Source: Bugula neritina
Lineage: Eukaryota > Animalia > Bryozoa
Assembly (NCBI GenBank): GCA_964035545.1
Contig: OZ037771.1
Span: 5,737,190 to 5,801,189, forward strand
DNA length: 64,000 nt
Direction of reading: 5' to 3'
The translations under genes and the position numbers were made by a program. Of this stretch, positions 23,744 through 28,273 are shown piece by piece (position 1 is the first letter of the stretch; every line of letters begins with the position of its first letter). Below the pieces are notes generated by a model that saw only the letters and a list, made by a program, of their open reading frames with translations, made no database searches and was not told the origin of the DNA.

Positions 23744-26700
23744 ATGAAGGGAAGCGCAGTTCTCTCACCTTTCCTCATTGTGGTGATCAGTTTGACTGCA
23801 TTGGCATATGACAGTCTTATCTGTCCAAAAAAATACTCCAATTATAAAGATCAACATGATACTGGTTAGTTTGTTTATTGTTATTATTCTTTGTTAACTT
23901 ATATAGTTGTATTTATATTTATTACTAGGCCTTTCAGCCCAGATTTTGTATATTATTTAATAATACATATATAATATTGAAACACTTTTACACGCACGCA
24001 AGCACAAACTCATGTGCACGCACACATATATAATAAATAAATATATATATATATATATATATATATATATATATATATCTATATATATATATAATATAAA
24101 TATATATATATATATATATATATATATATAAATATGCTTTAGCAGAAACATAAGTTTCTAATATTGCAAAGGTGTGGGCCATGGTACTCTGTTCTGTGCT
24201 GATGAGGGGACAAACCCCGAAACAGCTGCTGTCCACAGATTGAGGTATATATATTTTTCACATATCATATATATATATATATATATTGCCAGTTTATAGA
24301 TTGTATTATGACAAAGTGAAAGTAGTGGGAACTTTGGGAGATGAATACACTTCTGGCTACAGTGGACTAATCCTTGCTGAGTATGGCAGGATAAATATGA
24401 AAAAGACTAATGCATTGTCAAGGTAGTTTTAAACATTGCGTTTTATCTCTTATATATAATTATATTCCTTTTACTTAGTATACCCGAGTAATACGCTTTA
24501 ATTTTTATAACTTAAAAACTTAAAGCATCAAGTTAAAGTTAAAATCAAACCAAAGTAGCATCATTTCTAGCATTCATATTTCAACTATTCCAATTTAAGG
24601 AATTGAAAGGTAGAACTTTTGAACACATCCTTTTATTACTTCTCAGTTGTGTTGAATTTTGTAACTGCTGCTTTGCCATGCTAATTTTTGTTTTATATTT
24701 TAAATACTTTTACATATATAGCTTTTGTTGCCTGTAATGCTGAAACAAGAAATTACATAGTATAGCAAAAAACAGGCCAAACAAATATTGATGAGCAAAA
24801 GTCAAAATTCAACTTTGTTCGAATTATGCGACATATGTATTTCATGCCTCTGCAAAAAGGTTTTTTCATTTTATTTTTCTGTAAAAGTGCTGCTAATGTT
24901 TTGTAAATAATATGTAGTTTCAACATGATTTGAGACATTAATTAATAACCATTGGTTTCTCTAATCAATGTTTAAGCTTATCTAAATGTACTGTTGCTTA
25001 ACATAGCATAAATGCCAATCGGAATTTTTTAAATGCAAATACTTATATTTGCAGACGTAGTTAGCACTTGCATATGTTATGCAGTCTAATACTAAATTAT
25101 AACTTTAGAGATTTGTAATAATTGCCATAAATGGGCTAAATGTTTTGTTTTCTTAATACATCATGTAGGCTATTATGCCAATAGTTGGTTGACAATTAAA
25201 AAGTTATTTTACAGTCATTTAATAGCAGGTGACTCTTTTATTTGTAGAGATTTACCAAAACAAGCAAAAGCCTTGATTGAAGGAATACGTAAAATGAAAA
25301 ACATCAATTTTAGAAAAGATTGGAAAATTGTAAACATACTAGTTGGGTCACATGATCTTTGTGAGGCCTGCCGATCCCCGGTAAACTTGTGTACTCCACA
25401 GCTAAAGCCAGAGAGACTTTAAATTTATAAACATACACACACTTGCGCATATATATATATATATATATATATATATATATATATATATATATATATATAT
25501 ATATATATATATATATATATATATATATATATATATATATATATATATTATATATATATATATATATATATATATATATATATATATATATATATATATA
25601 TATATATACACATATATATGTATATATATACATATATATATAACACATACACGCGCGCACGAGCACACACACACACATATACACACACGCACACACACAC
25701 ACGCACACACATACACACACAGTAATGCCTGCACTTTATACGTTTCACTGATGACATATTATCAAAGGGACATTCACTTAAATTTCTTTGAATAGAAACA
25801 TAACTTTGCTAGTTAGCATTTCTTTGTCTCTTATCTTTTATTGTAGCACCTTTACTCAGCTCATAGGTTCAGAGATCACATTGAAGAAGCTCTAGATATA
25901 CTGCATCATGGTCTACCACGAACTCTAGTTAATCTAATAGAGCCATTTGATTTAAATGTCATAAGAGATCAAATGTATGCAGAAGAAAGATGCAGAAGCC
26001 ATCTTAGGTGAGTAAATCAATTGAAAATTTGATAGTGTGTCTTAATTTTTTCAAAAAATTGTTGGTAATTGTCTTTTATTTATACTAAAGGACACATAGT
26101 TTCCAGCTTTTTCTTTAGAATGTTGGAGATTGAAGCAGGTGATGAAGCAACCATACAACGACATTGATAGTTAAATAATAGGTTTGAGACATCAAACACA
26201 CTAGACAAATTGTTTTTAAGTAAAATTAGTTTATCCAATCATAAGACACTATTCATGCATGATTCTCTATTCTTTTCCAGAGCTACAGAATTATGTCCTT
26301 GCCAGACCAATTACTTGAAGCAGCACGTAGTCTCCTATGCATCTCAATACAGCCGAGCTCTGAGAAAGCTGATTGATACAAAAAAGTACGATGGATATGT
26401 CGAGTTTGCAGTCGTCCTGCAACCTTTCCTCCGTGAATTCGATATGCCAAGAACTAGGGTGTGTTTCTCTTATTTCAAATACATATACATGTGGAACAAA
26501 CATAAGCCAAAAAATATATATAATTTGCTTCACACATTTTTTCAAAATCCAACGCAATAGATCTTTTTCAATGGCCTCCGATATTCCTTTTGCAATTAAG
26601 AGTTGTGTTCCCCCAAAGAGAATAGGTTGAACCCTTGTCTAAAAAGCAAAATCATTAAAAATCCTAATTTTAGCTACTAATTAAAATTCTAGTTATGCTA

Positions 26701-28273
26701 TAGAATTGCTCTTTTAGGAGATAGATATTTTGGTATAAGCACACATATAAGTAGTTCAAAAAAGTTTTAAAAGTATTTCTTCATAACAAGTTTTGAAAAA
26801 TAAACTTATAAGGGTACGTTGTGGTTTTTGTTACTGAGGAATGCTGAAGAGGCACTTCAGCATTCCTCAGCAACCGAGACCACAGAAATATGTTCAAGCT
26901 TACTTTGCTCAAAATTTCCATTTTAGAAGAACACAACTCTAAATTGTAAACATGTGTATAAATGTGTATAATTTTATATATTTTGTTAGAATGGAGCTCC
27001 TGATTTCTCATACTTTGCTTCGGACTGCCTTCAACTAAACACAAAAGGTCAAGCTGCACTTGGTACAGCTCTCTGGAACTCTATGGTAAGATTTGGCAAC
27101 TTACAGAGTACAGTTCACATCTCTCCTTTCTTCAGTATGAATGGCAGTTTACACAAACTATATTTTTTTAAAACAGCAAATAACTTCAAGTTATGAAATA
27201 CATATAACTGCACATTCATAGCATTTGGTTCAACTTCTTAACATAAAAAACACTGTTATTGAAAGCTGTAAACACACGTGAATCATGTTCAATGATAAAA
27301 CGATCTCTGAAAAGTGTTAAGCATTCATTTGATACAATAAAATAGTTTAAAGTCTCAACTGCAAACATCAAAACTGTCAATTATATCATCATATAACTAA
27401 ATTGAGTGATCATACCAATGATGTATTACTTTTTATAATTCTGGTTTTAATTTATTATAACAGAGAATTTGTTTATGTGCTAACAAACCTGCAACATCAT
27501 ATTTTACTAAAATACTTAGTTCATTGTAAGCTATTGCTCACATTCTATATCAACTCTGCAGATAGAGCCAGTCAACTCTAAGCCAACCAGTATGGATTTC
27601 ACTGAAACCCCTAGATGTCCACAGGTCAGTAAAATTATTCATTTAACTGAAAGTGAAAAAAAGTCATTTTGCAAGACAATCAAATTAAATAATTTTTTTG
27701 GCTGTTCACTTTTTTTATAATTGACATGTTTTATGTGACTTGTTCCTATTGAACGCTGCTATTATTCTATAAGACCATTAGACTCATACCGTTTAATATA
27801 ACGCAGCTGTTCATACTTAGTACAATCTTCCGTGTTATGTGTGTGAAGTTATTGAATGCTACAGTAACATAATAATTTAAACCTCAATTAGTAAAATATT
27901 TAATACTACAAACATAAACATAGTTTTTATTAAAACAGTTACCTGCCTATAAAATGTATTTAGTTATAACAAAAGTTTGCTACTGCAGGTGTTTTTTTAT
28001 ATTCTATAATAGTACTAAATGAATTTTTAGAAATGCTGCAAAATTAGCTGTAATTCGATATTGAAACCAAAATTTACGGTTTTAAGTTAAATGTGTATGT
28101 TGCAGCAACTATACCTCCATACCAGATTATTCAACAAGACAGCGTATGCTATAAATAGGGCAGCTATGGCCACCACCACCAAAACCACCAACGCTGGCAA
28201 TTTCCTAAGAATCAAGTACTACCTTGCAGCAATACCGGTTTTGGCTATATTATTTCTCTCCAATTTAGTATAG
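23744..28273 (+). CDS. Phospholipase B1-like copy 3: predicted catalytically dead, internally deleted, GPI-signal-bearing (~349 aa, 8 exons)
   Basis: Exons 23744-23864, 24293-24422, 25248-25380, 25847-26007, 26281-26458, 26990-27085, 27562-27624, 28106-28273; frame intact. GDEY replaces GDSL; DCLQ replaces DCFH; C-terminus [34 protein letters not shown]. Confidence 0.85.
25449..25720. repeat. Compound (TA)n/(CA)n microsatellite
   Basis: Direct reading; a similar (TA)n tract lies at ~24040-24130. Confidence 0.95.

Follow-up and report, generated by a model that had tools for sequence, protein, structure and literature searches.

The third of four same-strand lipase genes in a 64,000-nucleotide stretch of the AT-rich, 216-Mb genome of the bryozoan Bugula neritina (contig OZ037771.1, positions 5,737,190 to 5,801,189; G000:C7:5737190-5801189, hereafter the window) seems to encode an expressed, glycosylphosphatidylinositol (GPI)-anchored pseudoenzyme of the PLB1-like SGNH family, a reading to which a probability of about 0.68 can be given. 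This gene, located at window positions 23744-28273 and referred to here as the target, comprises eight exons separated by GT-AG introns and predicts a protein of 349 aa with a single SGNH domain and eight Cys, without any stop codon in 1050 nt (Table 1). From its predicted sequence, the protein is a homologue of an enzyme family that has itself lost the essential catalytic residues, with all four of S, G, N, and H replaced, and is best described as a non-catalytic SGNH module that stands outside both the active SGNH hydrolases and the four-repeat PLB1 proteins.

The nucleophile Ser is replaced by Glu58 in a GDEY motif (GAA, 24343-24345) and the catalytic His of block V by Gln256 in DCLQ (CAA, 27032-27034), with Asp253 retained. 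Both losses had been proposed in a first-pass annotation made from the sequence and both hold, the Gln being present also in an orthologue. That annotation overlooked two further replacements, namely Asn80, five residues after the invariant Asn75, for the oxyanion Gly of block II, and His119, in GSHD, for the oxyanion Asn of block III. The register that places Glu58 at the nucleophile position is not due to chance, since no gap is needed to align the start of exon 2 with the corresponding first catalytic exon in ten paralogues (p=5e-5). None of the signatures of an active SGNH hydrolase, that is, Ser in block I, Gly in block II, Asn in block III, and Asp-x-x-His in block V, is found in the target. 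SGNH hydrolysis is impossible without Ser and His. According to the mechanism and residue definition given in PMC9487903, the nucleophile, the base, and both oxyanion donors are gone from the target, which would be unable to form an acyl-enzyme. It is hardly credible that the target has rebuilt its active site, for instance around Glu58, His119, Asp253, or the nearby Ser61 or Ser64, and works as an enzyme on a different substrate. The replacing residues (Glu, Asn, His, and Gln) are polar and potentially reactive, Asp253 is kept, and SGNH families tolerate changes in blocks II and III (PMC9487903), but the nucleophile and the general base are both lost here, the variant families in the consulted passages of that source keep Ser, and, of the ten residues that follow Gln256, four are not shared by the two species, unlike a constrained catalytic site.

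The loss of catalytic residues is accompanied by a loss of sequence between blocks I and II. In the ten other full copies of the family this region is divided among three exons, 127, 47, and 109 nt long (the last being 112 nt in one copy). The target has a single exon of 130 nt here, and the distance from GD to DWK is 52 aa, compared with 103-104 aa in the paralogues. The first 22 aa of exon 2 match the start of the paralogue block I exon (p=5e-5) and its final 12 aa resemble the terminal part of the block II exon (p=2e-4, against p=0.54 for the end of the block I exon), so that its 3' part is the end of the block II exon, with Asn75 conserved and Gly changed to Asn80. Because exon 2 begins like the first and ends like the third ancestral exon, a single in-frame deletion of 153 coding nt together with two introns seems to have taken place. 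A plain block I exon followed by the skipping of two exons was rejected, as the end of exon 2 matches the block II exon instead. Moreover, profile scans of 19900-25400 and an intron cassette search, which answered an earlier concern about alternative exons, found no hidden or alternative exon restoring GDS or the lost segment. The earlier statement that all splice sites are intact stands as regards the GT-AG introns, but not in comparison with the paralogues, three of whose exons are fused into one in the target. On a model of a pig PLB1 repeat, the deleted segment falls on low-confidence loops (38-66 and 95-107), a short helix (77-82), and a short strand (89-92), and the five core strands appear from the alignment to be kept.

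Eleven full copies of the family were found, four in the window, four within 40 kb upstream, and three elsewhere, with partial duplicates besides. The target shares 39-43% identity with the in-window copies, and copy 2 is 87.5% identical to copy 1. The description of these siblings as active can be sustained for GDS and DxxH, which are present in copies 1, 2, and 4, but block III deviates in all of these presumed-active copies (GQYD, GQHD, and GSAN), and the block II Gly of copy 4 is replaced by Asn, as in the target. Besides the target, two cluster copies have lost triad residues: paralogue C, probably a second anchored, dead copy, and paralogue D, probably a dead secreted copy. Paralogues E and F are candidate active GPI-anchored lipases. 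Four partial 3' duplicates of paralogue F (G000:C3:8971585-8972588 and G000:C9:1774530-1798840) consist of late exons only, one of them with DCVN, and were probably carried by segmental or element-driven duplication.

Database searches of the target were made exon by exon, and single exons gave neither a Pfam match nor a PDB sequence match. A word search with exon 5 returned one fragment, from an orthologue with 86% identity, and a protein search with the same exon returned multi-repeat proteins with PF00657, called phospholipase B1, membrane-associated, where named, with E values down to 8e-15. The best named full-length relatives are vertebrate PLB1 proteins, with 35-42% identity over exon 5. 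Blocks I, III, IV, and V and the Cys residues align with the pig repeats and with the ten paralogues, as expected of a member of the PLB1-like SGNH/GDSL family. A model of pig PLB1 repeat II (predicted local distance difference test score 79, predicted template modelling score 0.83) has acyloxyacyl hydrolase (AOAH) as its nearest structure, followed by other SGNH enzymes. Since exon 5 matches PLB1 and the pig repeat model resembles SGNH enzymes, the target can be regarded as a single-domain PLB1-like SGNH homologue; with one domain, its own start and stop, and nothing after the hydrophobic run, it is not a PLB1 of the vertebrate type. It seems that the bryozoan lineage expanded single-domain PLB1-like lipases. 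On contig L022 (4900-10500), from another invertebrate, two divergently oriented single-domain PLB1-like genes are predicted, and by this reading such clusters also occur outside Bugula.

A fragment of an orthologue in a sibling Bugula (L011), spanning exons 4-7, is identical to the target at 143 of 166 aa (86%), has equal exon lengths, keeps the Gln of DCLQ, retains all eight splice dinucleotides, and shows no stop or frameshift in 498 nt. Over these exons of this one species pair, the synonymous divergence (dS) is 0.165 and the nonsynonymous divergence (dN) 0.079, a ratio of 0.48 (bootstrap 0.25-0.94; Fisher p=0.017); for scale, the ratio is 0.37 for copies 1 and 2 and 0.20 for the intact pair E and F. 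The introns have diverged by 0.128, with 17 indel events, from which about seven coding indels would be expected; none was observed. DNA reads were compared with the target over 25760-28500, downstream of exons 1-3, and revealed a second allele, whose last exon differs by three silent changes and two replacements of Thr by Ala, none of them in the tail, and for which no coding indel is listed. The terminal branch of the target over shared exons (0.88, against 1.33 for the triad-bearing copy 4) is not long for the family. Word searches, two metagenome scans, and the Atlas returned nothing for exons 2, 3, and 8 of the orthologue, blanks that are uninformative as to absence. Because the orthologue keeps the Gln, dN/dS is 0.48, and coding indels are absent, the gene appears to be maintained under moderate constraint, as judged over exons 4-7 of one species pair, rather than to be a dead pseudogene. 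The initial judgement on this point, and its expectation of a dN/dS ratio that is not near 1, are thus upheld by the ratio, the coding indels, and the splice sites conserved in the sibling species.

It is quite unlikely that the gene is slowly decaying, with catalysis and some of the fold gone, constraint weak or relaxed of late, and splicing perhaps impaired since a retrozyme inserted beside the exon 2 acceptor. Such a course would fit the wide interval around the dN/dS of 0.48, a dN that amounts to 0.62 of the intron rate (0.079 against 0.128), the 51-aa deletion, the weak context of the exon 2 acceptor, and the broken partial duplicates of the lipase family in the genome. However, no marks of a pseudogene (stops, frameshifts, or neutral evolution) were found in the 1050 nt of the target, in exons 4-7 of the orthologue, or in the listed second-allele differences, coding indels number zero against seven expected, exon GC is well above intron GC, and about six substitutions at four catalytic codons together with a clean deletion imply a long coding history without a disabling hit.

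Regarding the C-terminus of this maintained pseudoenzyme, exon 8 is single-copy in the genome, has a GC content of 41% against about 25% in its flanks, and encodes a Thr-rich polar linker, the triplet Asn323-Ala-Gly (NAG, 28190-28198) located 26 residues from the C-terminus, a basic spacer of 8 aa, and a 16-aa uncharged hydrophobic tail (hydropathy 2.9; the final 14 residues carry no charge), without a cytoplasmic part. GPI signals have four parts, namely a polar linker, a small-residue triplet, a spacer of about 7, and a hydrophobic tail reaching the C-terminus (PMC5054108), and the target combines all of them with an N-terminal signal peptide. The test was a hand-made rule rather than a trained predictor, and about 0.05% of stop-ended frames in the examined DNA pass it; given this low rate and the GC-rich exon, a chance tail from AT-rich read-through was rejected. 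It is very unlikely that, instead of acting as a GPI signal, the segment stays in the membrane as an uncleaved helix or is cut off to yield a secreted protein. Vertebrate PLB1 does use a transmembrane helix, the rule is hand-made, and paralogue E lacks a clear omega triplet by it, but nothing follows the hydrophobic run of the target, there is no cytoplasmic basic cluster, and the position of the small triplet, the polar linker, and the spacer fit a GPI signal, in a layout shared by paralogues C and F.

The origin of this anchor needs a revision of the first-pass annotation, which recognized a GPI-like 55-aa last exon with a Thr-rich spacer, NAG, and a hydrophobic end, but took it as gained from last exons of about 8-11 aa. 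These lengths are true for the three paralogues in the window (8, 8, and 11 aa), but three of the ten other paralogues (C, E, and F) have GPI-like last exons of 54-62 aa, E and F together with intact triads. The tail of paralogue C consists of a Thr-rich linker, the small triplet SAG, and a hydrophobic end, and the tail of the target aligns with it (p=0.0025 with segment-preserving shuffles, before correction for six comparisons). Many vertebrate PLB1 matches end in a Thr/Pro-rich stalk and a membrane helix. Since C, E, and F share the tail type, the target tail aligns with that of C, and vertebrate PLB1 is anchored, it is more likely that the anchor was retained from an older state, with losses elsewhere, than that it was gained with the loss of catalysis. 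Its gain in the target during neofunctionalization, to give a tether or decoy that works with the neighbouring secreted lipases, is distinctly improbable. It would agree with the tree, which groups the target weakly with copies 1 and 2 and their short tails (83/83) and in its best form requires the anchor label to change three times, and with the short tail of the outgroup-most paralogue G; however, a single anchor origin is not rejected by the approximately unbiased tree test (p-AU 0.405), PLB1 is anchored family-wide, and adjacency is the sole support for an enzyme-plus-pseudoenzyme partnership with copies 1, 2, and 4. The idea that copies 1 and 2 still carry remnants of an anchor in a different reading frame was not accepted, as its support was weak: 28 comparisons gave DNA p values of about 0.02-0.03 at best, and the GC content there is that of introns. 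The +1 frame of the copy 2 last exon (window 19782-19900, + strand) reads as a polar linker and a hydrophobic end, probably by chance.

Among known systems, PLB1 has four repeats, of which only repeat II has an active Ser, and a C-terminal anchor (PMC4613230). In the pig protein, GDS, GxND, and DxxH are all missing from repeat I, which is also shorter between blocks I and II, with 87 aa against 99-104 aa. It corresponds to the PLB1 proregion named in the title of a paper cited in that source. The target resembles PLB1 (PF00657, Lipase_GDSL) in its motifs, Cys, signal peptide, and C-terminal anchor, and repeat I in particular in the absence of Ser, Asn, and His and the shortening between blocks I and II. 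Nevertheless, unlike PLB1, with its four repeats, transmembrane helix, and cytoplasmic tail, it is predicted to consist of a single dead domain that stands alone and carries a GPI-type C-terminus, and its deletion is larger (52 aa) than that of repeat I. Another GDSL/SGNH paralogue kept without a catalytic Ser, like the target, is the plant pseudoenzyme At1g54030, also known as MVP1, GOLD36, or ERMO3. This protein has no lipase activity and plays another cellular role and, unlike the target, has one catalytic change, belongs to another subfamily and kingdom, keeps a full-length fold, and is not described as GPI-anchored (PMC4757993). SGNH pseudoenzymes are thus already known from plant GDSL proteins and PLB1 repeat I, and a literature search that mostly did not reach subscription papers turned up no animal protein that is a PLB1-like pseudoenzyme, stands alone, and carries a GPI anchor. 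The SGNH domain of AOAH is the nearest solved structure to the pig PLB1 repeat model, which and not the target was the query (E 5e-9, template modelling score about 0.47); AOAH binds an acylated glycolipid and, unlike the target, is an active enzyme with a saposin domain. Within the cluster, paralogue C is similar to the target in the loss of the block V His and in its Thr-rich linker, small triplet, and hydrophobic tail, but keeps Ser and the three ancestral exons and is ~41% identical over the shared exons.

A possible history and mechanism can be proposed. Some PLB1-like copies would have kept, or had, a C-terminal anchor exon, whereas others end in a short secreted tail; the target copy would have retained the anchor and replaced S, G, N, and H, while one in-frame genomic deletion cut 51 residues from the stretch that links blocks I and II. 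Its signal peptide would direct the protein into the endoplasmic reticulum, GPI attachment near Asn323 would replace the C-terminal 26 residues, and a trimmed SGNH core, stabilized by what could be four disulfides, would be displayed on the outside of the cell. Since the lost segment is a long loop-helix-strand insert after the nucleophile, the face that once bore the active site is probably more exposed and may serve as a binding surface. The most likely role would be binding, without hydrolysis, of a lipid, an acylated ligand, or a partner lipase, as in PLB1 repeat I but as a separate protein. Judged separately, lipid or ligand binding is the leading candidate, at somewhat less than even odds, followed by some other function and, slightly less likely, by the regulation of a partner. 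It is unlikely, though worth considering, that a stand-alone GPI-anchored trimmed SGNH domain acts in trans in the manner of PLB1 repeat I or serves, on the surface of bryozoan cells, to bind lipids or acylated natural products.

Several points weigh against a maintained, anchored pseudoenzyme. Only 17 residues lie between Glu58 and Asn75, whereas small SGNH enzymes have more over the equivalent interval (~29 residues in TesA), so that folding of the target is not assured. The dN/dS ratio is only moderately below 1, with an upper bound of 0.94, while the active pair E and F gives 0.20, and the orthologue covers exons 4-7, with Glu58, the deletion, and the tail outside the cross-species comparison. 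In addition, splicing could be disturbed by the surroundings of the exon 2 acceptor, which is preceded by a (TA)10 run and by a retrozyme insert that contains a hammerhead core, and the gene is known from DNA alone, its expression being presumed and any ligand or partner hypothetical.

As for the gene model, exon 1 is single-copy in the genome and matches exon 1 of copies 1 and 2 in length and phase. Hydropathy, used in place of a trained predictor, indicates a signal peptide with hydrophobic residues 3-22, and an A-x-A motif ending at Ala21 predicts cleavage after that residue. The eight Cys match the family pattern, and the signal peptide, shared cysteines, and open frame are intact, as first annotated. 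Exon 1 is joined to the acceptor ending at 24292, in phase 1 and in the register of all paralogues. This acceptor was preferred to a nine-exon, 371-aa model with an exon at 24172-24244 because of the paralogue phase and register and the even Cys count that results. The additional exon looked like a PLB1 linker, but its peptide scores only 2.1 bits on the PLB1 linker profile and the DNA there is a high-copy retrozyme fragment, identical on other chromosomes; the corrected eight-exon model scores 8.8 bits. Splicing through from the target into copy 4 was also rejected, given phase 0 at the end of exon 7 but phase 1 at the start of the copy 4 block I exon, and distinct ends for each gene. Judging from the sequence, a non-coding first exon is probable ahead of the start codon, at 23380-23743 (+ strand), with a donor GTGAGT near 23410 and an acceptor near 23668.

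Table 1. Coordinates of the target exons, the inserted repeat, and the main paralogues (window positions unless a contig is given).
Feature	Position	Strand	Description
Exon 1	23744..23864	+	121 nt, ends in phase 1; start codon, signal peptide, first family Cys (Cys27)
Exon 2	24293..24422	+	130 nt, phase 1 to 2; fused block I and block II exon
Exon 3	25248..25380	+	133 nt; block III GSHD, His119 (CAT 25351-25353) for Asn; CxxC
Exon 4	25847..26007	+	161 nt; block IV helix and strand; equal length in paralogues and orthologue L011
Exon 5	26281..26458	+	178 nt; CPC and AVVLQPF motifs
Exon 6	26990..27085	+	96 nt; block V DCLQ
Exon 7	27562..27624	+	63 nt; family CP motif at end
Exon 8	28106..28273	+	55 aa and stop; family end motif, Thr-rich linker, anchor-like tail
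Hammerhead retrozyme fragment	24129..24248	+	5'-truncated copy of a young 272-nt retrozyme in a (TA)n tract of intron 1; CUGAUGA core at 24199
Paralogue copy 1	1546..9685	+	352 aa; GDSF, GQYD, DCFH; 8-aa last exon
Paralogue copy 2	14106..19808	+	352 aa; GDSF, GQHD, DCVH; 8-aa last exon
Paralogue copy 4	30783..37376	+	366 aa; GDSL, GSAN, DCFH; 11-aa last exon
Paralogue C	G000:C7:5718179-5723634 (L003)	-	Ser kept, His to Asn (DCFN); GPI-like 62-aa last exon
Paralogue D	G000:C7:5731514-5737090 (L004)	-	GDLS for GDS, YCFH for DCFH; short tail
Paralogue E	G000:C7:15093711-15098961	-	GDSL, GTND, DCVH intact; 54-aa anchor-type last exon
Paralogue F	G000:C9:7886898-7891090	+	GDSL, GTND, DCVH intact; 54-aa anchor-type last exon

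The retrozyme fragment in intron 1 is the 120-bp 3' end of a 272-bp unit, lies in sense orientation to the pre-mRNA, and is separated from the exon 2 acceptor by 44 nt. The repeat has at least 40 scored copies, dispersed in the genome and about 90-99% identical, 272-bp tandem arrays occur, and the repeat sits in (TA)n tracts; the hammerhead core is identical in nine of the ten loci examined. The elements of a type I hammerhead (CUGAUGA, stem II, GAAA, GUC, and stem I) can be recognized in the sequence, with both stems able to fold; Rfam models gave no hammerhead match to the fragment. Metazoan non-long terminal repeat (non-LTR) retrozymes have type I hammerheads and a range of 150-450 bp (PMC7229834), and the type I core and the 272-bp dispersed and tandem repeat agree with this class, although the insert, unlike its members, is only a 3' fragment with putative self-cleavage. 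The fragment also offers the in-frame cryptic exon 24172-24244, with an acceptor ending at 24299, which is not a family exon but by chance has an open frame resembling a PLB1 linker, a trap for gene prediction. The fragment could cleave intron 1 or be spliced in as 22 extra in-frame residues.

Elsewhere in the window, intron 3 of copy 1 contains an LTR element (3124-5743) with two identical 128-bp terminal repeats and gag-like, zinc-knuckle, and protease frames on the minus strand, in which no reverse transcriptase frame was seen. A spliced gene of the nicotinamidase/isochorismatase family lies at 46400-51300 on the minus strand (Pfam PF00857, weak), and exons at about 58400-62430 on the plus strand resemble what we take, by recognition only, to be a membrane protein of the Bax-inhibitor-1/lifeguard family.

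The target, so far known from one genus and with a function that we infer, offers a clean natural experiment, in which four catalytic residues have been replaced and a 51-residue insert removed beside intact secreted and intact anchored siblings. If the protein folds and binds, it would define a role of the PLB1 domain without catalysis and could bear on the unexplained non-catalytic repeats of mammalian PLB1. If the unlikely reading of a domain that acts in trans or binds lipids or acylated natural products at the cell surface is true, the target would represent an animal receptor-like protein built from a lipase and, with paralogue C, one of two dead anchored copies among secreted lipases.

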